Assembly: GCA_002104945.1 (NCBI GenBank)
Contig: MCFH01000004.1
Location: 434,001 to 498,000 of the forward strand
DNA length: 64,000 nucleotides
Source of the DNA: Piromyces finnis finn
Taxonomy: Eukaryota > Fungi > Neocallimastigomycota
Direction of reading: 5' to 3'
Positions 2,615 to 46,830 of the stretch are shown one piece after another. How positions within the stretch are numbered: the first letter of the stretch is position 1; each line of letters starts with the position of its first letter. The notes below the pieces were generated by a model. It saw only the letters and a list, made by a program, of their open reading frames with translations. It had not been told where the DNA came from and searched no databases. Position numbers and translations under genes: made by a program.

Positions 2615-5600
2615 ATGTTGAAAAATAATAATATACAGTCAGAATCCTCAGAAATAAATATTAATAATAATGATTCTGAAATGAAAAAAGAAAAAAATAC
2701 ATCATCTAGTAAAATAAAAACATTAACACTTGACGATGAAGATGATGATGATAACGATAATAATAAAAATAATGACGAGAATATTAATGAAGAACAAAGC
2801 AATGATAATAATGATAATAGCTCTACTCATAATGATGATATCAAAGATAATGTAAGAATTAGTGACAATAATGAAGAAGAAACTTCAACAATTAAAATTT
2901 TTTCTAGAATTAGACCAGTTAAATATAAAGTACCAAATCGATATTGGATTACAAAACCAGAAGAAGATGTCTTAAATAATGAAAATCCCCTACCAAAAAT
3001 TGGGTTTTTGATTCCACGAAGTGAATCTCAAGGTTTAATTAATAATCAAAAAGAAAAACATGAATTTAAATTTGACAAAGTCTTTGATAAAGATACCAAA
3101 CAAGAAGAAATATTTGATGTAGTAGCAAAAGATGTAGTACTTAGGTATATTATAAGTACAAAAATATTTTCATAAAAAATAATTTATATTATATCATATA
3201 AAAATCATTTAATAATTCTATAAATAAAAAAAATATTAAAGTGTTCTTGATGGATATAATGGAACAATTTTTGCATATGGACAAGTAATTATAAAAATAG
3301 TTATATAATATATATATATGTGTGTGTGTATATATGTGTGTTATAATAATAAAATAATTATAATATAAATCATAATTAGACTGGTTCTGGTAAGACATTT
3401 ACAATTACTGGTGGTGCAGAAAGATATGAAGATAGAGGTCTTATACCTAGAAGTTTGCAATTTATATTTAAAGAAATTCAAAAGGTAGTGTAATAAATAA
3501 TAATAAATAAGTATATGCCAGTATAGCAATATTTATGGATAGTAATCATATTATATATACTTTCAACTTGAAAAAATATAACAAATCAATGTTTTAATAT
3601 TATTTATATATATATAATATATTTTTTATAAATCTATAATAAAAATTTTTTAGCGAACAGACTGTGAATATTCTATTAATATCTCATACTTGGAAATATA
3701 TAATGAAAGTGGATATGATTTATTGGATTCATCAAGAGAAGCAAAAAAACTAGAAGATTTACCGTAAAAATAAAATTTTATTTTCTTATAATATTATATT
3801 AATTTTATTAAAAAAAATTTTTTTTAATATAAATATATATTACAAATAGAAAAGTGTCATTAATGGAAGATGAAGATAATAAAATACATATTAGAAATTT
3901 AGCCTCTATACCAGCAGTAAACGAAGAAGAAGCATTAAATTTATTATTTATTGGTGATACAAATAGAGTTATTTCAGAAACTCCTTCTAATCCTGAATCA
4001 TCCCGTAGTCATTGTATATTTATTGTTACAGTTGTATGTAAACGTCATGGACATGATGCAATTAGAAAAAGTAAATTACATTTAGTAGATCTTGCTGGGT
4101 TTGTATTTAGTATCTAAAATGAAAAATATATTTTATTCGCTATTTCAATTATTAACTAAATATTAATATTAATTTAAATACTAAAATATATTAGTTCTGA
4201 ACGTGTTGCAAAAACTCAAATTGGTGGAACATTATTAAAAGAAGCGAAATATATTAATTTATCACTACATTATTTGGAACAAGTAATTATTGCATTACAT
4301 GAAAAGTCTTTAGGAAAAAGACAACATATACCTTATAGAAATTCAATGATGACCAGTGTATTAAGAGATTCACTTGGTGGTAACTGTAAAACAACTATGA
4401 TTGCAACTATTGCAGTAGAACCTGAATTAATTGAAGTAAAATTAAAATATTATTTAATAAAATAAAATAAGTATATAATTGTAATAAACTTATTGGATAT
4501 TATTATAACTTAGGAATCAATATCAACATGCAGATTTGCACAAAGAGTATCACTTATCTCCAATAAGGCAAAACTTAACGAAGAAATTGACCCACAATTA
4601 GTAATTGAACGATTAAAACGTGAAATTGCTCGACTTAAAACAGAATTGGCAATAGCAAGAGGTGATGGTGAAGATTCAAATGAAGAACTTCCTCAGTATG
4701 AAAAAGAAAGGTGATAAGTCATGAAAATATTAAAAATACTTTCAAATTAACAATTATTACTAAATTAATAATATAATATATAATAGGGTTCAGCAAGATG
4801 TTCAGAATTATTTATCATCTGATTTAGTATCAAACGAATTATTATACAACGATTACAGAAAAATTAGATATGCCTTTTCAATTATGAAAGTTTGTTATTG
4901 CAATTAAAATAAAATTAAAGCAATGTATATTAATTATAAATTAATTATAAAATATTAATTTAAAAAAATATTTTTAGAATATTATTAATGAAAAAGGTGT
5001 AAATGAATCCCAAAGTAAATCAAATAATATTGACGATGAAAAGAACATTATTGAAGTTAACAATGAAAATGTAACAGTGGCGATTAATAATAATATATCA
5101 AACAGTAAACTAGAAAGTAAAAATATTGAAATAAATAAAGCATGTGAAAGATTAAAGAAATTAATTGCCCATAGAGATAATGAAATAAGTAAGTAGAAGA
5201 TATTTTTTTTAAATTTCACATAAAAACACTATTATAACTTTAGAATATACTGATATACTGATATACTACATTCGTATACTTTATTTATAATTGAAGATAT
5301 ATTAATTGGAATGGTTAATGAATATAAAAAAAAAGTTGGAGAATCAAATATTTCCTTGAATGAAATAAGAGCTGTAATTTTCTAATATATGCATACATAT
5401 ATACATAATTTCAATTTATATAGATATTTTTATTTAATATTAATTTTACAATATTAACAATATTTTATATTAGAAATCTAAATCTTCTACAACAACATTA
5501 TCTTCGGAAATATATTTAAGTTTAAAAAATAAAAAAAATAATGAAAATAATTATAATGATGAACATGAAGAAATAAAAGGAAAACCTAATGCTAAGAATA

Positions 5601-6956
5601 TTAGTAGCTCCCCAGACAGTATTATAGATAATAATGATGATACTAATGATAAAAACAATAAAAAGATATCAATAATTCTATCACCCGAAGAAAAGATTAA
5701 AGCATATAATATATTTATACAAACTTATGAACCTCAAAAATGGATTGATAAACAAAAATTACTATTAAAAGCTAAATACATTGAAGCTAAACAACTTGGT
5801 GAAACAGCTAATAATTACAGAAATATCATCAGTAGGTTTATCTTTAAATATTATAATACATTTCATATAAACTAATAATTTAATATATAATAATATATTT
5901 ATATAAATTATATTAGAATCGTTAAAATCAAAATTAGTTAATGGGGTGGATACATTAACACCTGAAGAGAAAACTAAAATTGGTAGTAATGCATCAGAAT
6001 ATGCATCAAAGTAATTATCTTTTCAGATTTTTGAAAATTATAAAATATTAATTATATGTGAAACCTAATATATAAATTCATAATTCTATCATATTTTTTT
6101 AGATATCAAAAATCATATTGCCACTTAAAAGAAATGAAAATAGAAATAGAACATATACAACATCTACTTGAAAAGGCAAGATTTAAATTAACAAAAGATT
6201 TCGAATTTTGGATACTAAATAAATATACAACTGATAGTAGAATATTTAACACACCAAATAAATGTAATTATAACTATTTTTATTATAATAAGCTTTATCT
6301 TAATATAGACGCACTATTAATAGTATAATTTAAAACAATTAGTGGAAACAAATATTGAAAAGAATGAAAATCATAGTACAGAAAATAATTCCGTCAGTAG
6401 AATTAATCAAGAAAAAGGAAACAAGATTAGATCTAGAGAGCCATCAACAGAATATTCATTAAGGTCAGCTAAAGCCCTTTCAGAAAGATCTGCAGCTACC
6501 TCAGAATCTACATTATATAATCCAAGTATTTCATCTATTAATGATGAAAGCCAACAAACTTCAGAAAAGCATCATAGAAATAATCATCATAGGTCACCTT
6601 CTTCACTATCATCACATTCTTCAAAAAATAATAATGATTATAATAATAATAGATATTCATCAAGAAATAATATATCTAGACCATCATCATCAGTTTCACA
6701 ATCAAAAGTTACTAAATACCCCACATCTTCTAAAAGTGTACATAATCAAATTTTGAAACCTAATCCTTTAGCAAATTCTGTAGATCCAAAAATAATTCAA
6801 TATAATTCAAATTTAAAAGATTATAATAAATTATTAACAACTTCTCAATATGATAATATTGAAAGAAAGCAAAAAAGCATTTCAAGCTTTAGCAGTTCCA
6901 TAAAAAATGATATTGATATTTTCATGAAAACAAAAAATAATATAGAAAAAAAATAA
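2615..6956 (+). CDS. KIF6: Kinesin-9 family motor (KIF6-like), multi-exon
   Basis: Motor motifs recovered across GT-AG introns: [24 protein letters not shown]|TGSGKT (P-loop split by intron 3285-3379), [17 protein letters not shown] (switch I), LVDLAGSER (switch II), [23 protein letters not shown]. Coiled-coil exons and a Ser-rich tail follow, ending at TAA 6956. Confidence 0.9.
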
Positions 6957-7856: not shown

Positions 7857-10800
7857 ATGAGAGAGATTGTTTCAATTCAAGCAGGACAATGTGGCAATCA
7901 AATTGGTTCAAGATTTTGGGAAACAATTAATGAAGAACATGGAATTGATGAAATTGGAAGATATATTGGAAATAATAAATATCAGCTAGAAAGAATAAAT
8001 GTTTATTATAATGAAACACAACAAAATAGATACGTACCAAGGTATTATATGATTTACTCTCATATTTTATCAGAAATTATTCATTAACTTAAAAATATTT
8101 TTATTATAAATAAATCAATAAAATATTAAATAGATCTATTATGATTGATCTCGAACCTGGTATATATACATATATATATTTTATATTATATAAACGTAAT
8201 AAAATAAGATTAATTTTTATTTTAATTATTAATAAGGTGCCCTTGACTCTATTAAAAGTGGTCCAATGGGAAAATTATTCCACCCAGAAAATTTTATTAA
8301 TGGTAATAAATGTTTTTTTTTATTATTAAATAATAAAAAAAATATACATATATTTATTTATATATCAATATAATTATAGGTAGTACTGGTGCAGGTAATA
8401 ACTGGGCAAAAGGTTATTATTCAGAAGGTGCTGAATTGATAGATCAAATTATCGATGCTATTAGAAAAGAAGCTGAAAACTGTGAATGTTTACAAGGTTT
8501 TCAATTAACACATTCAATAGGTATATTTAAAAAGGATTTATAATATATTTAGAAACAAATTATATAAAATTATATGATTTATTCAATAACAAACACCTAT
8601 TTATATGCATTAATAAACATGAAAAAAGGTGGTGGTACAGGTTCAGGTCTTGGAACTTTATTATTATCTAAAATTAGAGAAGAATTTCCAGACAGAATGA
8701 TATGTACATATAGTATTATCCCATCACCCAAAGTTAGTAATACAGTTGTAGAACCATATAATGCAATTTTAAGTACTCAACAACTTACAGAGTTCTCTGA
8801 TGAAACATTCTGTATTGATAATGAAGCATTATATGACATATGTCTAAGAACTTTACAATTCAAAAATCCATCCTACCAACATCTTAACTATTTAATTTCA
8901 GTTGTTATGTCTGGTATTACAACATCATTAAGATATCCTGGACAATTAAATTCCGATCTAAGGAAATTAGCTGTAAATATGGTTCCTTTCCCAAGACTAC
9001 ATTTTTTCACTCTTGGTCAAGCACCACTTTATCCTGAAAACTCAGTAGATTATTCCAAACTTAGTATTCAAGAATTAACTAATCAAATGTTTAATACAAA
9101 AAATTTAATGACTGCTTATAATCCAATGCATGGCCGTTATATGACTTCAGCATGCATATTCAGAGGAGATACACTATCTACTCAAGAAATTGAACAGCAT
9201 ATAAAAGAAACACAAGAAAAGAATAGTCCATATTTCGTAGAATGGATTCCTAATAATATCAAAATTAGTCTTTGTGACATTCCATCCAAATCATACAATC
9301 TTTCTAGTACATTTATTGGTAATACTACAGCTATCCAAGAGCCATTTAAAAGAATTGAAGAACAATTCTGTGCTATGATTCGTAAAAAAGCCTTTTTACA
9401 TTGGTACACTGGAGAAGGATTGGATGAAATGGAATTTACAGAAGCTCATAATAATGTTACTGATTTAATTAGTGAGTATCAACAATACCAGGATATACCT
9501 ATTGAATTCGATTTCCAAGAAGCTCATGAATTATTCGATGCAGAAGAATTAAGTGAATATGACGCACATGTCTATGGACGGAAATTAAGTACAGCTATTA
9601 GTATGAAAAAGAACTCAATAGTATCTAATTATAGTAATAACAATAATAATTCTATGCAACGAACATTTAGTATTGGAAATAGAAGTAGCATTAATATTAA
9701 TAATTATAATAATAATATTAATAATAATACATATGGAAATTATACTTCTCAAAGAAGAGGTTCAATACTTAAAAATTCAAGTAACTATAATCCAGATATG
9801 AATAATCATAATCCAAAAAGAGTATCTATTAGTTTTAATCGTCCATATCAGTCATCTAATGCAAATGAAAATAATAATAATAGTAATATAAATAGTGATT
9901 TACCTCCAAGAGTTCCTTTATCAACATACTCGGGTGTAATAAAAAAATCATCGAATAATAGTAGTAGAAGTGGAAGTGGAAGTATCAACAATAGCATCAA
10001 TAATATAAGTAATAATAACACTGGTGTTAATAATAGAAATAATTATATAAATGGTAATAATAGTAATATGAGTAGTAATAACAATATTGGAAGTAATAAT
10101 AATATAAATAATGGTAATAATAATAATATTGGAAGTAGCAATAATATAAATAATGGTAATAATAACAATATTGGAAGTAACAATAATATAAATAATGGTA
10201 ATAATAACAATATTGGAAGTAACAATAATATAAATAATTGTAATAACAATAATACTGGTAGTAATAATAGTATCAACTCTAATAGAATTGCCGATTTTCA
10301 AGTTGTGGGTAGTCAAACAATATTCAATAATGGAAATGATCTTAATAGTTATTCAATAAATAATAATTTAAACTGTGAAAATAATAGTAATAATAATAAT
10401 AGTAATAATAATCTTGAGCAAAGAATGATGTACTCTCCAGCAAGAAAGTCACATTCTAATAGTATAACAAGTTTATATAGCAATGAAAATGTCAATATGC
10501 AAAATCAAAACATAATAAGAAGTAATAACAATAGTCAACAAAATTCAATGAATAATTTGAATAGAAGTATTTCTATACCACAACAACAATCTAATGTAAT
10601 GCAAAGCACTATAAAATCACAATCCTCTGGAAGTGAATCTGAAGTCTATGACCGTGGATCATCCCAATCTTCTAATTCTAATCTCTCTACCATTTCGTTA
10701 AAGGCAAGAAAGGGATCTATCTTCCCAACTCAATTATTAGCTCAGAGATTGAATAAAAGCATTAATAATGCCAGACCACCATTACCTAATTTTAATGCAA

Positions 10801-11672
10801 GACCAAATATTGGTATTCAAAATGACTTTATTGAAGAAGATAATGAATATGATGATAGTAACAGTTCATTTAATAATGACAAAAATAACTTTAATTCAAA
10901 CTATAATTCATATAATAATGATAGTGATAACCAAGATATCTATCCTAATAAGAATGAATTTAATTCAACGCAAAATATTTATACTAACAATAATAATAAT
11001 CTTAATACAATATATGAACAATCCGATATTAATAGTAATTCCAGATTAAGTTCAAATAATTCATTTGAAAAAAATATCAATAATAATAATAATAGTTTCT
11101 CAAATAATAATTTAGACCAAAATAGATCAAGTAATTCAAACAATAATATAGCAAATAATAATATTAATAGAAGCATACCTCAATTCACAAGAAATAACTC
11201 GGGAAGTCAAAGTAATAGTATTAATAATAGCAACAACAACATTCAACAAATCTCACGTAATAGCTCTGGTTCTGGTTCAATAAATAAAGTAAATAATAAT
11301 AACGGAATATATAATACATCTAATAATAATATTAATAATTTAGAAAATCAACAAAATAGCAATAACTCAATGAATAATTTGGATCGTGATGCTTGTATTG
11401 ATAATAATGATTTAACTAACGATCTGTCATATCAAATGAAAAATATATATATGAATGATGACAGACAAGCATCATTATTATATAAGGAAAACAATAATAT
11501 TTCAAATAGTAACAATAATATAAATAATCAGCAAAACCAATATTTAGATAATAATGATAATTATAATCAATCAGTTCATTCATCATATAATTATATAAAC
11601 AATTCAATAAATAGGTTATTACATTCAAATAATTACAGTGGCTCAAATAGTAATACTGATCAGTCACAATCA

Positions 11673-11703
<31 letters not shown>

Positions 11704-13643
11704 GTGGTTCTAATATAAGCATGAGTAAATTTCAACACTATAATAATAGTAATAGTAATTCTAATATAAATATAAATCAACCTCAGCAACATAGTAATAG
11801 AAATAGTAGTTCCAATATGAATATGAATCAATCTCAACAATACAGTAATAGAAATAGTAATTCTAATGTAAATGTAAATCAACCTCAGCAACATAGCAAT
11901 AGAAGTAGTAGTTCCAATATGAATATGAATCAATCTCAACAATACAGTAATAGAAATAGTGGTTCTAATATGAATATGAGTCAGCCTCAACAACATAGTA
12001 ATAGAAATAGTGGTTCTGGTATGAATATGAGTCAACTTCAACAATATAATAATAGAAATAGTGGTTCTAATACAAATATAAGTCAATCTCAACAATATAA
12101 TAATAGAAATAGTGGAAATAGTGGTTCTAGCATGAATATGAGTCAATCTCAACAATATAGTAATAGAAATAGTGGTTCTAGCATGAATATGAATCAATCT
12201 CAACAATATAGTAATAGAAATAGTGGAAATAGTGGTTCTAGTATGAATATGAGTCAACTTCAACAATATGGTAATAGAAATAGTGGAAATAGTGGTTCTA
12301 GTATGAATATGAGTCAACTTCAACAATATGGTAATAGAAATAGTGGTTCTAGCATGAATATGAATCAATCTCAACAATATAGTAATAGAAATAGTGGAAA
12401 TAGTGGTTCTAGCATGAATATGAGTCAATCTCAACAATATAGTAATAGAAATAGTAGTTCTAGCATGAATATGAGTCAACCTCAACAATATAATAATAGA
12501 AATAGTGGTTCTAACATGAATATGAGTCAACCTCAACAATATAATAATATAGATAGTGGTTCTAATATAAATATAAGTCAACCTCAATTAAGTAATAGTA
12601 ACAGAAGTAGTCAATCCAATATAAGTAATTTACAATCATACAGTAACAGAAGCAGTCAATCTAATATGAATAACACACAATCATATAGTAATAAAAGTAG
12701 TAATTATGTAAATATGAGTCAACCACAGCTAAGCAACAGTAATAGAAGTAGTAATCCGAACATAAATTCACAATTAAACAATAGCAATAATAATATAAAC
12801 ACTAATCAATTACGTCAGTATAGTAACAGAAGTAGTAATTCAAGTATGAATATCAATCAATCACAACAACATAATAATGGAAGTAATAACTATAATTTGA
12901 ACATGAGTCAACCCCAATTAAGTAATAGCAATAATAGAATTAGTAATTCTAATATGAATCAGTTTCAACATAGTAATAGAAACAGTGGTTCAAGTTTAAG
13001 CATAAATCAACAATATAATGATAGAAATAGTGAATCCAATATGAATATGAATCATTCACAACAATATAATAATAAAAGTAGTAACTCAAATATATACAAT
13101 TCTCAAATTAGCAATAGTAGCAATAGAAATAGTATTTCTAATATGTCAGACGAATATTATAATAATATGTTAAATAATGGTTCTAGTAATAATATACCTT
13201 CATCTTCTCAACAATATAATTCTAATAATAGTATATCCAATCAACAATTAAATAATAATTATAATAATGATGTTCAACAACAGTACTACAATAGAGATGG
13301 TTCACATAGCTCAAATAATAGCAATAATAATTTATCAAATCAAATGAATAGTAGAAATAGTATTAATACATCTCACTATAATAATATAAATAATAATAGT
13401 AGTAGTGATTTATATGACTATCAATATAATACCAATAGAAATATTCAACAGCAAATGAATAATCGTATTCAAGCCCAAACGCCTCAATCACATCAATCCT
13501 TAAATGAAGATAGTTTCTATCAAATGAGTAGTCAAGAACAAATGTACCCAATTTCATTAAAAAATATGAATATGGTAAATAATAATGAATACAATAATCA
13601 ATTTAACCTAAATCAACAACCTAATAATAATAGAAACTATTAA
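7857..13643 (+). CDS. TUBB: Divergent beta-tubulin with a ~1,360-aa Asn/Ser/Gln-rich C-terminal extension (about 1,810 aa)
   Basis: Exons 7857-8041, 8134-8159, 8237-8302, 8380-8520 and 8629-13643 have GT-AG introns and total 5,433 nt, in frame. Motifs: MREI N-terminus, [57 protein letters not shown]. The acidic tail continues without a stop into low-complexity sequence. Confidence 0.93.
10083..10290 (+). repeat. Coding tandem repeat, about 5 x 42 nt (14-aa [14 protein letters not shown]), in the tubulin extension
   Basis: The motif aatattgg/aatactgg recurs at 10083, 10125, 10167, 10209 and 10251. Confidence 0.9.
11765..12600 (+). repeat. Coding tandem repeat, about 15 copies of a 17-aa unit ([17 protein letters not shown]; 20-aa variant with an extra GNS)
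   Basis: Visible in both the DNA (51-nt and 60-nt units) and the translation of ORF 8574..13643. Confidence 0.92.
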
Positions 13644-14327
13644 TTAGGCAGATATTTTCCCTTTTAATTTTATTACAATAAGCTTACATTTTTATTCAAT
13701 TCAATAACATGATTTTTATTTTTTTTTGCATTTTTTTCCAGATATTTTTAAAAATCATAGGTAACTTTTTTAAAATTCTATTTTTTTATTTTAATTACAT
13801 TTTTTATTTACAACCAAAGTTATTTTGTCATTATATTATAAGCTGCATTATTTTTAGTACACAACATCAACATTTTAATTTAGTACATTTGCAATCAATT
13901 TTTTATACAATATTTTCATTTTTAACAATATTCAGTTTTCTAACATTAAGATTTTGTAAATTGCAATCAATTTATTATATTATTTGTATTTGTCATAATA
14001 TTTAATGAAATAAATAAATATGTATGTTATTTATTAATAAATATATAGTTAAATATTTAAATATAAATATATAGATATGCAATATTGAAATAAATAATAA
14101 CAAAACAATAAAAACACATAAAAAAATAAAAAGACTTTTATTGTTTTTTCTATTATAATATAAATATTAAAAAAATAAATCATTTCTATTTATATATATA
14201 TAGAAGATTTTTATTTGGATAAATCTAATATGTAATATTAATTAATAGATAGAAATTTTATTATATCAAATAAAAAAATATCTAATTTTATTTTATTAAA
14301 TGATAGTATAGTGTATAAATAGTATTC

Positions 14328-18458
<4,131 letters not shown>

Positions 18459-43195: not shown

Positions 43196-45213
43196 TTTAT
43201 TTTTAATTATGTGCATTATAATTTTTATAATAATAAAAGTTTTAAAATACTTGCTGTTTTTTTTATAAGTTTGATCCATAAGAAATTATATCAATGATTT
43301 ATTTATTATTTTTTTTGTCGGTAAAAATGGATCTACTTTCACCAAAATCTTAATACATTTTTAAAGAAAGATATTGAAAGATGAATATATGATAACATTT
43401 ATAATTTTTTTCTAAGTTGAAATGTAATCTTTAATAAACATCATATCATTAATAAGGGAATAACACTTGATACTTTTAAGGAATATATTATTTTACATAT
43501 TATTTTGAAGAAGTGTATCATACTTTTATTATTTTTATCTTAAATAATTTTTTTTGATAGGGTTAGTAATAGATTTAGTGTTTACTGAGCTAAAGAATAG
43601 CGATAGCGTACTAATAAGATAATGTAACATCAACTCACTTTTATCTAGACAGTCTAATCCTAATATAGAGTCTTGGATAAATACTAGAAACAGTGTAATT
43701 TGTTTGTCAGATGTTATTTTTATTTTATAGTTGGTATGGATATTCTATTAGGGAAAAGTTAACCTTGAATATAATAATACATAATAATATAAAACTTTTA
43801 AAGGATATTATTACATCTTGTGTTTAAAATTTATTAATATAAAATAGCTGATATACTTATAGCTTGATGATACACAAAATACTTAATGCATAAAGAATAA
43901 TTATCAATATATATTATTATTACCCAATATATTGATAAATTATATAAGATAAATAAATAAAAGAGAAGAGATATTTTTTTTCTTGTTTAAAAGAGAAAAA
44001 AAAAATAAAAAACTATATAATACACTATATAATAAATGCTAATTTTGATTTTTTCTACATTTAAAATGGTTTGGTTATTCGACAGATCCATCACTTTTTC
44101 TTTTTTTCTGTACATTTATTACCACCACCAATACTATTTCTTCATTTTAACTTTTAGCAAAATAAAAAAGATCTACATTTATTATATTATTTTTTTTACT
44201 ATTTACATTTATTTGAACCAATAAATTTCAATTTAGCTCATATCTATAAAATTTTGTAGGAAGACATTCTTTCCTAAAATAAAAATGTATATTTCTTTTT
44301 ATAAATATTTCTATGATGAAATTTGCGCAGTTAATAGTCATAAAATATACAATTATATTATTCATTTATTTACTTTTTCTGTGTCTTCATTTTATCAATG
44401 TATTATTATAAATTATTATTACTATCCAGTAGTTAATAAATATATACCACTTTCTAGTTATACATAAATAAATGTAAATATTACATACAAAATAAATTTA
44501 ATTTATATTTTTTTATGTGATGGATAAATAAGTATATCAACAATTATTATTTATAAAAATGGGTAAAAAAAAAAGATTTAAACTTTATTTTTAATAAAAT
44601 AATTAGTGTAACCTAATAATTATTTATTATTTAATATAATTTTATGCAACTTTATTTATTATATTTTCCCGATTTTTAATTAAAAAAATGAATTGATTTT
44701 CAAAATTTTATTTCTTTATTTTTTATGATACATTTTTCTTAACCAATAATTCTTTATAGATGTGACTTTTTTTATTAAAAATTAATTTAATAAGTTTTTA
44801 ATTAAAAAAAAAAAGATATACCATTTTTAGTATGTAATTTTTATTACCACATTTGTTATATAAATACAAATTTAGTTTTCTTTTTTTTTTTTTATTTCAT
44901 TATTCTATATTATTATAAATTTTGAAAATTTATATATTTAAAAAAAAAAGGTGTTACTATAAATTTTTTTCAAAAAAAAAAAAAAAAAAACAGTAATACG
45001 TAATATAGATATACTATAATTTTTTTGATAAAAATTATAGTAATAGTCAAAATAAAAATAAAATATTAATCATATCTATACATATACAAAAGTGTACAAA
45101 AGTATACAAAAGCAATAGCTATAAAAAGAACTTAAAAGAATAATAAAATATCATCAAGTTTAACATATATCTATAATTTTTTTTATAAAAATAAATTGCC
45201 AATAAATAAAAAA

Positions 45214-46830
45214 ATGAGAACCAATTTCATTATTTCTATTGCAACCTTAGTATTAGGTGTTGCAAAAACATTTGCTGAACCAGATCCAAATTTCCATATT
45301 TATTTAGCTTTTGGTCAATCAAATATGTTAAGTGGAGATATTGAAAGTCAGGATAAAAATGTTGATAGTCGTTTCCAAATGATTTCAACTGTTAATGATT
45401 GTGGTAGTCGTCGTTTAGGTGAATGGTATACTGCTGTTCCTCCATTAGCTAGTTGTAATGCAGGTTTAGGTCCAGTTCCTTACTTTGGTAATACTTTAGT
45501 TGAAAAATTACCAAAAGAAATCAAAGTTGGTGTTGCCGTTGTTGGTATTGCAGGTTGTGATATTCAACTTTTTGAAAAAGATAGATATCAAAGTTATGAA
45601 CATGCTGATTGGATGACTTATTATATTGATGAATATGGTGGTAATCCATATGGTCGTTTAGTTGACATGGGTAAGATTGCTCAAAAATCAGGTGTTATCA
45701 AGGGTATTCTTGTTCATCAAGGTGAAACTAATAATGGTAATCAAGACTGGCCAAAACGTCTTAAGGGTGTTTATGAAAATCTTCTTACAGATTTAGGTTT
45801 AAAAGCAGAAAATGTTCCACTTATTGTAGGTGAACTTGTTCAATCCGATAAAGGTGGTATTTGTGGTGGTATGAATAATATCATTCAAACTGTCCCAGAA
45901 GTTATTCCAACAGCTCATATTGTTTCATCTGAAGGATTAGAACAACAAGGTGATGGTTTCCACTTTACTTCTGCTTCTCATCGTATTTTAGGTAAACGTT
46001 ATGCCGAAGTTATGTTAAGTATTTTAGATGGAACTACACCAATCAAACAAGGCGGTGGTGAACCAGATAAGGATGGTTATTATTTCCATAATACTTTTGA
46101 AAATGGTGCTGAACGTTGGGAAAATAGAGGTTATGCTAGTGTAGCTCAATCAAAGGATACTGCTTATAAGGGTAATGGATCTCTTTACTGTGAAAAGAGA
46201 GAATATAATTGGAGTGGTGCTTCCCGTTCTCTTTCTTCTAACGTTTTTGAACCAGGTAAAGAATTTAGTTTCAGTGCTGTTGTTAAGTATGATGAAGGAC
46301 CAGAATCTCAAACCTTTTTCCTTTCACTTCAATATAATGATGATTCGGGTGAAACTCAATACGATAAAATTGCTATTGTTAAGGTTACTCAAGGTGAATG
46401 GGTACAATTAGCAAATACAAACTATAAAATTCCAGCCAATTCTTCCAACTTAATGTTTTACATTGAAACTGAAGAAGAATTATCAAGCTTTTATGTTGAT
46501 GAAGCTATTGCTGCTCCAGCAGGTACTAAAATTGAAGGACCTAACTCTGGTGCATCTTCTTCTTCAAGTGACAATACCCAATGTTTTGCCATAAAATTAG
46601 GATACTCTTGCTGTCAACAAACCACCAAGGTTGTCTATGAAGATTCTGATGGAGAATGGGGTGTTGAAAATGGTGAATGGTGTGGTATTCCATCCACTAC
46701 TTCTTCCTCATCTTGTTGGTCCTCTGCTTTAGGTTATCCATGTTGTACTGTCTCAACTGACGTTTACTACAAGGATAATTCTGGTAGTTGGGGTGTAGAA
46801 AATGGTGATTGGTGCGGTATTCCAAATTAA
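45214..46830 (+). CDS. Cellulosomal acetylxylan esterase: signal peptide - CE6 - CBM4/9/22-like module - two fungal dockerins
   Basis: Intronless. CE6/SGNH motifs AFGQSNM, HQGE and DGFHF are present. A CBM_4_9-like module ([23 protein letters not shown]) follows, then two dockerins (LGYSCC...[11 protein letters not shown]; LGYPCC...[11 protein letters not shown]). The ATG at 45214 is preferred over the TTG start at 45196. Confidence 0.95.

Follow-up and report, generated by a model that had tools for sequence, protein, structure and literature searches.

A divergent beta-tubulin gene of Piromyces finnis that continues into a long, conserved low-complexity tail

The window analysed here is a stretch of 64,000 nucleotides of Piromyces finnis contig MCFH01000004.1 (positions 434,001 to 498,000 of the forward strand), and all positions given below are those of the window. 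At 7857-13643 on the (+) strand lies a beta-tubulin gene of five exons, all of whose introns are GT..AG, and its spliced coding sequence (CDS) of 5,430 nt gives a predicted protein of 1,810 aa and 204 kDa in which the tubulin is followed by a low-complexity tail of 1,359 aa. The public model of this gene, ORX58424.1, has 502 aa. We find that tubulin and tail belong to one conserved, selected and transcribed gene, and it is very probable that its product is a real, translated and conserved tailed beta-tubulin.

One reading frame from tubulin to tail

The original prediction, made from the sequence of this stretch, had placed the tubulin and the tail in one gene and one reading frame, and this was borne out. 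A single open reading frame (ORF), 8574..13643 (+), of 1,689 aa holds the last tubulin exon together with the tail, and upstream of it AT-rich introns separate four short exons. The tubulin motif YQQYQD ends at 9494, and between 9500 and 13640 there are 0 stops in the coding frame as against 73-423 in the other five frames. The exon borders were set by RNA joints and by the match of the spliced CDS to the public protein, residues 1-459 of which are reproduced exactly. Exon 1 (7857..8041) ends in YVPR, has a Pfam Tubulin match, corresponds to residues 1-62 of ORX58424.1 and is covered by a spliced RNA contig. Exon 2 (8134..8159) is a micro-exon of 26 nt encoding SIMIDLEPG, found as GATCTCGAACCT in the RNA contig between 8054 and 8236 and confirmed by the CDS match to ORX58424.1. 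Exons 3 (8237..8302) and 4 (8380..8520) are followed by GT..AG joints at 8303-8379 and 8521-8628, respectively, both of which were seen in the RNA runs X2 and X3 and agree with the CDS check. Exon 5 (8629-13643) carries everything else, namely, the rest of the tubulin body from GGGTGSG to SEYQQYQD (8629..9494; Pfam Tubulin_C at 1.8e-30, beta-tubulins of PDB at 1e-209), an acidic and aromatic C-terminal segment of 23 aa at the position of the E-hook (9495..9563), the tail (9564..13640) and the stop codon TAA (13641..13643). All these features lie on the (+) strand, and the tail is supported by its stop-free frame, by orthologous tails and their ratio of nonsynonymous to synonymous substitutions (dN/dS), by RNA contigs and by structure prediction with AlphaFold2 (AF2).

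Transcription was followed in four small P. finnis RNA runs, and of the words sampled from the region these contain 28-86%. In X2 and X3 an intron-free contig that contains the micro-exon and the joints 8303-8379 and 8521-8628 runs unbroken to 9673 and 9759, respectively. From X1 a contig of 2,232 nt aligns to 9300-9853 and 9992-10168. Since these two parts lie 138 contig letters apart, which is the length of a 138-nt repeat left out by the alignment, the contig is colinear with the genome for 600 nt into the tail. For the rest of the tail there are contigs at 10420-11660 and 12520-13662, with small pieces between them, and zero differing letters were found. Depth over the tail was similar to that over the tubulin part (21 vs 14-18 in X2 and 12 vs 9 in X3). 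The contig at the end of the tail runs about 20 nt beyond the stop codon, to about 13662, after which depth drops.

The public models of the gene miss the tail. ORX58424.1 is 100% identical to the tubulin body up to ...DAHVYGRKL, and in its 90%-identity cluster it is joined by the models of Anaeromyces robustus (473 aa), Neocallimastix californiae (468 aa) and Piromyces sp. E2 (462 aa). All four stop soon after the acidic segment, each in a different isoleucine-rich junk C-terminus, and in each genome the model is followed by about 4 kb of unannotated DNA that is filled by the read-on ORFs. In ORX58424.1 an 'intron' of 80 nt (9589..9668, + strand) shifts the frame into junk that ends at a TGA (9799-9801). 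RNA contigs of X1, X2 and X3 read straight through, with no splice joint at 9589-9668 or at the GTGAAT near 9553, and at the latter site the absence of a splice had been predicted. All four public Neocallimastigomycota models are wrong in that the tail is cut off and the C-termini are invented. Scans of the window for tRNA genes and Rfam families gave nothing relevant to the tubulin gene, and a scan past the stop codon for bacterial-type promoters and terminators, a model that is not meaningful for a fungus, gave the same result as shuffled controls.

Conservation and selection in four genomes

In A. robustus (ORF of 1,561 aa), N. californiae (1,383 aa) and Piromyces sp. E2 (1,461 aa) the frame of the last tubulin exon likewise stays open beyond the tubulin, and these are the tailed orthologs that had been expected in other Neocallimastigomycota genomes. 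The placing of the sequence in the Neocallimastigomycota, implied in the original prediction, proved correct as well. The gene structure is alike in the four genomes. The orthologous tails have 1,094-1,272 aa, which makes the range 1,094-1,359 aa when P. finnis is included. With dN/dS calculated by the Nei-Gojobori method, the tubulin bodies are 94-97% identical at a dN/dS of 0.02-0.06, and the 23-aa acidic segment is 100% identical at a dN/dS of 0 and a dS of 0.7-2.6. The tails are 54-65% identical over 885 ungapped columns and their dN/dS is 0.21-0.33 in every sub-region including the repeats, and not the value of about 1 that would have counted against the original prediction. Invariant columns number 345 in the tail alignment, about 19 conserved islands keep their order in the four species, and all four orthologs terminate in ...QQPN..RNY followed by a stop.

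Because dN/dS taken from a protein-guided alignment of low-complexity sequence could be biased, the tail DNA was also aligned blind to the frame. In this alignment 182 of the 196 gap runs (93%) are multiples of three, and mismatch is 0.33-0.39 at codon position 3 vs 0.17-0.30 at positions 1 and 2. Pairwise identity of the tail DNA is 58% vs 33-37% in shuffled or reversed controls. Given the conserved ORF, the purifying selection and the RNA contigs that bridge the junction, it is very likely that the tail is translated, as had been predicted. A fifth, partial ortholog on a contig of the Joint Genome Institute (JGI) metagenome 3300010977 (L005:1-2329) keeps the islands and has an open stretch of 606 aa. 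A homolog search limited to proteins of 920-2,930 aa returned no annotated full-length tailed ortholog, and the long matches that it did return were gene-model fusions.

The tubulin body, the tail and their relatives

Both Pfam Tubulin (PF00091) and Tubulin_C (PF03953) match the body, the GQCGNQ (T1) and GGGTGSG (T4) loops are present, and the top 60 PDB matches are all beta chains with E around 1e-209. Residues 1-448 are colinear with the beta-tubulins of PDB except for one 1-residue insertion. The body is 62-69% identical to other beta-tubulins, and in the tree the four orthologous bodies are set apart from these by a long branch of about 1 change per site. Compared with 24 other beta-tubulins, 22 near-invariant positions are altered, mostly conservatively, and none of these lies in the nucleotide-binding loops T1 and T3-T7, the borders of which we take to be approximately those of 1JFF. 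The sequence of the M-loop is divergent, with the tyrosine aligned with Tyr283 retained. From an alignment of 29 sequences AF2 recovers the tubulin fold with a predicted template modelling score (pTM) of 0.72. Judging from the intact nucleotide-binding loops and the M-loop tyrosine, the body would most likely form a dimer with alpha-tubulin and polymerise, entering microtubule lattices.

The acidic segment stands where the canonical E-hook stands: it begins directly after H12 (…EYQQYQD), the first 23 residues are acidic, and a position on the outer surface is expected. The E-hooks of the comparison set have 10-27 residues and are Glu/Gly-rich and variable, whereas the acidic part in P. finnis is rich in aromatic residues, is invariant across the genomes and leads into 1,359 further residues with an overall basic character. 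Body and acidic segment together have an isoelectric point (pI) of 4.8. In the AF2 model the acidic segment forms low-confidence helices with a predicted local distance difference test score (pLDDT) below 50, and beyond the tubulin fold AF2 gave no confident structure, neither for the tail nor for the body with the C-terminal segment.

The tail is rich in N (30%), S (20%) and Q (9%), as had been predicted, with N+Q at 40%, K+R+D+E at about 0.10, ILVFMW at 0.16 and Y at about 4.6% of its 1,359 aa. In being long and poor in charged and hydrophobic residues it has the composition of a prion-like Q/N-rich domain. Its pI is 9.6 and its net charge +26 in P. finnis, and across the orthologs the net charge is +18 to +30. 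Asparagine is encoded by 369 AAT vs 47 AAC codons. For the middle 542 residues of the tail AF2 gave a pLDDT of 36.5 and zero secondary structure, which is consistent with disorder, although the alignment of four sequences behind it is weak. The in-frame repeat units of the original prediction were recovered by Tandem Repeats Finder. Tandem repeats of 42 nt (14 aa) lie at 10056..10273 (+) in 5.2 copies, with a copy number that varies by species, and repeats of 51 nt (17 aa) of the SQQYSNRNS-x-SNMNMN type lie at 11689..12611 (+) in 17.3 copies, and these are present in all four species in variable number. An antisense ORF of 305 aa with Ile/Thr/Arg/His repeats, 11670..12587 (-), was rejected as a gene, being the mirror of the 51-nt coding repeats.

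The conserved islands are distributed over the whole (+) strand tail. In its proximal part (9570..9935) motifs of the basophilic-kinase type are found, the islands here being VYGRKLST (9570-9593), 9753-9788, RVSISFN (9819-9839) and 9900-9935, with at least 6 of 8 columns invariant across the four species. The middle part (10302..11444) contains GSQTIFNNG (10302-10334), an island at 10428-10463, SLKARKGS (10695-10718), LNTIYEQS (11001-11024) and NDLSYQMKN (11418-11444), and the conserved C-terminal end (13488..13640) consists of SHQSLN (13488-13505), an island at 13515-13547 and the terminal ...QQPN..RNY. The basic kinase-type sites RKLS, RRGS and RKGS that had been noticed from the sequence are present, along with KRVS, and most of them are conserved in the orthologs. 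The conserved motifs include GRKLST, QRRASILK, KRVSIS and KARKGSI(Y/F)P, of which QRRASILK resembles LRRASLG, the classic substrate of protein kinase A (PKA). A profile of the middle tail was searched against 1.84 billion representative proteins and found one 57-aa fragment only, so that the origin of the tail was not traced in this search. Since nothing more than this fragment was found, the tail is, as judged by sequence similarity, lineage-specific.

The claim that no tubulin of this architecture had been described did not hold. Findeisen et al. 2014 (Genome Biol Evol, PMC4202323) reported, in one sentence, that Chytridiomycota and Neocallimastigomycota have variants of beta-tubulin extended at the C-terminus by up to 1,100 residues of low-complexity sequence, and described the extensions as 'not conserved across species' (PMC4202323). 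The tailed architecture itself is already known, and the P. finnis gene is almost certainly an ortholog of their hand-annotated Neocallimastigomycota variant. The two share a host in the Neocallimastigomycota and a low-complexity extension of around 1,000 residues inside a beta-tubulin gene structure; they differ in that the P. finnis tail has 1,359 aa as against 'up to 1,100'. Unlike the extensions described as not conserved, the tail is conserved within Neocallimastigomycota, with 54-65% identity and a dN/dS of 0.2-0.3. The new findings are this conservation among members of the phylum, the signs that the tail is selected and expressed, and the fault in the annotation. Literature searches found no later work on tailed beta-tubulins.

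The tails of the inspected chytrid genes are short (62-127 aa) or unrelated. That of Batrachochytrium dendrobatidis has at most about 127 aa, the next gene being 130 bp away, and that of Polyrhizophydium has 62 aa. The B. dendrobatidis gene (L006:6001-8603) has two public models, of 446 and 553 aa, with zero tree distance between them. In B. dendrobatidis and in Entophlyctis (L007:6001-8631) the beta-tubulin lies between a Sec2p/RAB3A-like gene and a Radial_spoke_3 (RSP3) gene, and the chytrid and Neocallimastigomycota tailed genes have no common synteny and no similarity in their tails. The free tree leaves the placement of the latter relative to the chytrid variants unsettled; a constraint to a joint clade was not rejected, with a p value of 0.56 in the approximately unbiased test (p-AU) and a log-likelihood difference (lnL) of +1.6, and the long branch is a concern. 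An independent case was found in a JGI metagenome (P0104 / L008:67-3039; JGI 3300041861), where the C-terminal half of a beta-tubulin and a Glu/Gln/Asn-rich tail of ~795 aa form one ORF. It differs from the P. finnis gene in its unrelated tail sequence and canonical-like body, and it is known from a single short contig.

A gene for a KIF9-type kinesin (Pfam Kinesin, Microtub_bd and KIF9) at about 2615-6328 (+) precedes the tailed tubulin by about 1.5 kb, and A. robustus and Piromyces sp. E2 have a KIF9-type kinesin in the same neighbouring position. Elsewhere kinesins of the KIF9 type are flagellar; this neighbour is a hint of a link to the zoospore and does not amount to evidence for one. Downstream, the gene at 14328-15926 (-) has a model of 465 aa without a Pfam match, and its N-terminal ORF (...KRRHFSKLYNTMPLQHPVMSISDKAIVQYNKRK...) is kept at the corresponding position in the four genomes. 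Further away, the gene at 45196-46827 (+) codes for a carbohydrate esterase (SASA) that also bears CBM_4_9 and two CBM10 dockerins, as is typical for components of the anaerobic-fungal cellulosome.

What the tail may do

The explanation that we regard as the probable one overall is that the gene codes for a divergent beta-tubulin isotype that runs on into a disordered, mildly basic tail of 1,359 residues. That this tail would serve as a projection like those of microtubule-associated proteins (MAPs) is the mechanism that we prefer, but it is put forward tentatively and is less likely than not. The C-terminus of beta-tubulin is on the outer surface of the microtubule, and the tail would for this reason project outward from the microtubule wall as a covalent, MAP-like brush. 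The basic tail, the acidic body and the conserved R-[RK]-x-S-hydrophobic sites together suggest reversible contact under phosphorylation control, in which the tail (pI 9.6) would touch the acidic lattice (body pI 4.8) or partners and phosphorylation at these sites would control the contacts. The repeat blocks would serve mainly as a spacer of variable length. Such a tail would share with the projection domains of tau, MAP2 and MAP4 and with neurofilament side-arms that it is long, disordered, basic and Ser-rich, has basophilic kinase sites and stands on the surface of a polymer. This likeness is one of mechanism and not of homology. The MAPs are separate proteins that are bound non-covalently, whereas the P. 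finnis tail would be within the tubulin chain, and there is no sequence similarity between them. A more specific form of this proposal, that the tubulin carries its own MAP on a specialised microtubule array of the zoospore or thallus, with rebinding to the lattice, crosslinking or condensates and with PKA-type switching at RRxS, is a speculation to which we give less weight.

A rather unlikely alternative is that the tail is translated but mostly neutral low-complexity ballast, generated by replication slippage and AT bias and tolerated at a solvent-facing C-terminus, in which a few short motifs close to the junction and to the C-terminus would be of importance, or none at all. The 42-nt and 51-nt repeats with their species-specific copy number, the spread in tail length from 1,094 to 1,359 aa, the failure of the profile search to find a homolog elsewhere, the wording 'not conserved across species' in PMC4202323 and the much shorter or unrelated chytrid tails are all what ballast would give. 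However, a stop-free frame of ~4 kb has been kept in four genomes at a dS of about 1, while one nonsense mutation would delete a dispensable tail. Moreover, no segment of the tail, the repeats included, departs from a dN/dS of 0.2-0.3, and the alignment has 345 invariant columns, islands in a conserved order and a common RNY terminus.

The original prediction had gone further than a projection and proposed a prion-like, phase-separating tail by which the tubulin seeds condensates that nucleate or organise microtubules, perhaps at the zoospore kinetosome or as a substitute for a microtubule-organising centre (MTOC). This function was not supported, and we consider it unlikely. It draws on the composition of the tail (N+Q 40%, S 20%, Y about 4.6%, few charges), on the disorder in AF2, on the multivalent x17 repeats with regularly spaced Tyr and Met, and on the KIF9-type, flagellar kinesin upstream in three genomes. 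The tail does resemble prion-like domains of the Sup35/Ure2 type and the Asn-rich regions of Plasmodium and Dictyostelium in having 40% N+Q and few charged or hydrophobic residues, but the likeness to prions is one of composition alone. As with the Asn repeats of Plasmodium, the composition may largely reflect AT bias, since a genome of roughly 20% GC readily yields N-rich low complexity and by default uses many AAT codons (369 AAT vs 47 AAC), and composition is for this reason weak evidence. In addition, the number of repeats varies freely among species, conservation is highest in short motifs of the basophilic phospho type, which are not specific to condensates, and not in aromatic stickers, and the kinesin synteny is no more than suggestive.

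That the public models are right, and that a short intron or a terminator after the acidic segment leaves a tubulin of 460-500 aa with the downstream 4 kb untranslated or in a separate transcript, is very improbable. Four models from JGI and NCBI end at 462-502 aa, 9589-9668 is a GT..AG candidate intron, and a minor spliced form could escape contigs, which drop rare isoforms. On the other hand, the four isoleucine-rich junk C-termini are unrelated to each other, RNA contigs of three runs pass 9589-9668 without a joint, and the downstream frame is conserved and selected and ends at a common RNY-stop in four genomes. The last alternative, a decaying or non-functional duplicate tubulin that has lost its C-terminal stop, for which the long branch (about 1 change per site), the 62-69% identity to beta-tubulins and the frameshift and stop in the metagenomic ortholog might speak, was rejected as next to impossible on the body dN/dS of 0.02-0.06 and the intact GTP motifs of a gene that is expressed and correctly spliced and is found in four genomes.

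Several points weigh against the tailed beta-tubulin with a projecting tail and must be set beside the evidence for it. The tailed protein is documented at the DNA and RNA level alone. One transcript over 9500-13643 had been predicted, and contigs do cross the junction and extend 600 nt into the tail, but the contigs break at the repeats and the 5.4 kb CDS is not contained in full in any one RNA record. The interval 9854-9991 is bridged by the length match only, and 10374-10419, 11661-11828 and parts of 12068-12519 are uncovered. There may also be a minor isoform, spliced or shorter, or a transcript of the tail alone, as contigs hide rare isoforms. Depth is unreliable and not quantitative, the value for X1 over 8600-9599 being 0 in a 6-kb alignment and 24 in a 1.2-kb alignment. 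As to selection, synonymous sites are almost saturated (dS about 1), and a protein-guided alignment of low-complexity sequence underlies the dN/dS values. In the partial metagenomic ortholog (L005) 1 nt is missing after KRVSIS, and a TTA-to-TAA change gives an in-frame stop where the others have Leu, Asp, Gly or Ile, with 606 open codons downstream of the TAA; these lesions are either sequencing errors or the marks of a damaged copy or allele. Among the best 120 matches there was no canonical Neocallimastigomycota beta-tubulin, which is uninformative, and that the tailed gene stands beside a canonical paralog is taken from the wording of PMC4202323. Finally, competence for polymerisation and outward projection of the tail are deduced from general tubulin structure.

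The correction of the annotation is of immediate practical use. Proteomic, transcriptomic and comparative work that uses the public models is blind to the tail, and the corrected coordinates, the conserved motifs and the predicted phospho-sites provide experimental handles. Motors, MAPs and modifying enzymes work on microtubules at the C-terminal tails of tubulin, which normally have 10-27 residues, and the tailed beta-tubulin is a natural experiment in how much of the microtubule surface fits into tubulin itself. Should the more specific proposal of a tubulin that carries its own MAP be true, this would be the first natural case of a tubulin C-terminal tail enlarged to a complete scaffold for regulation.

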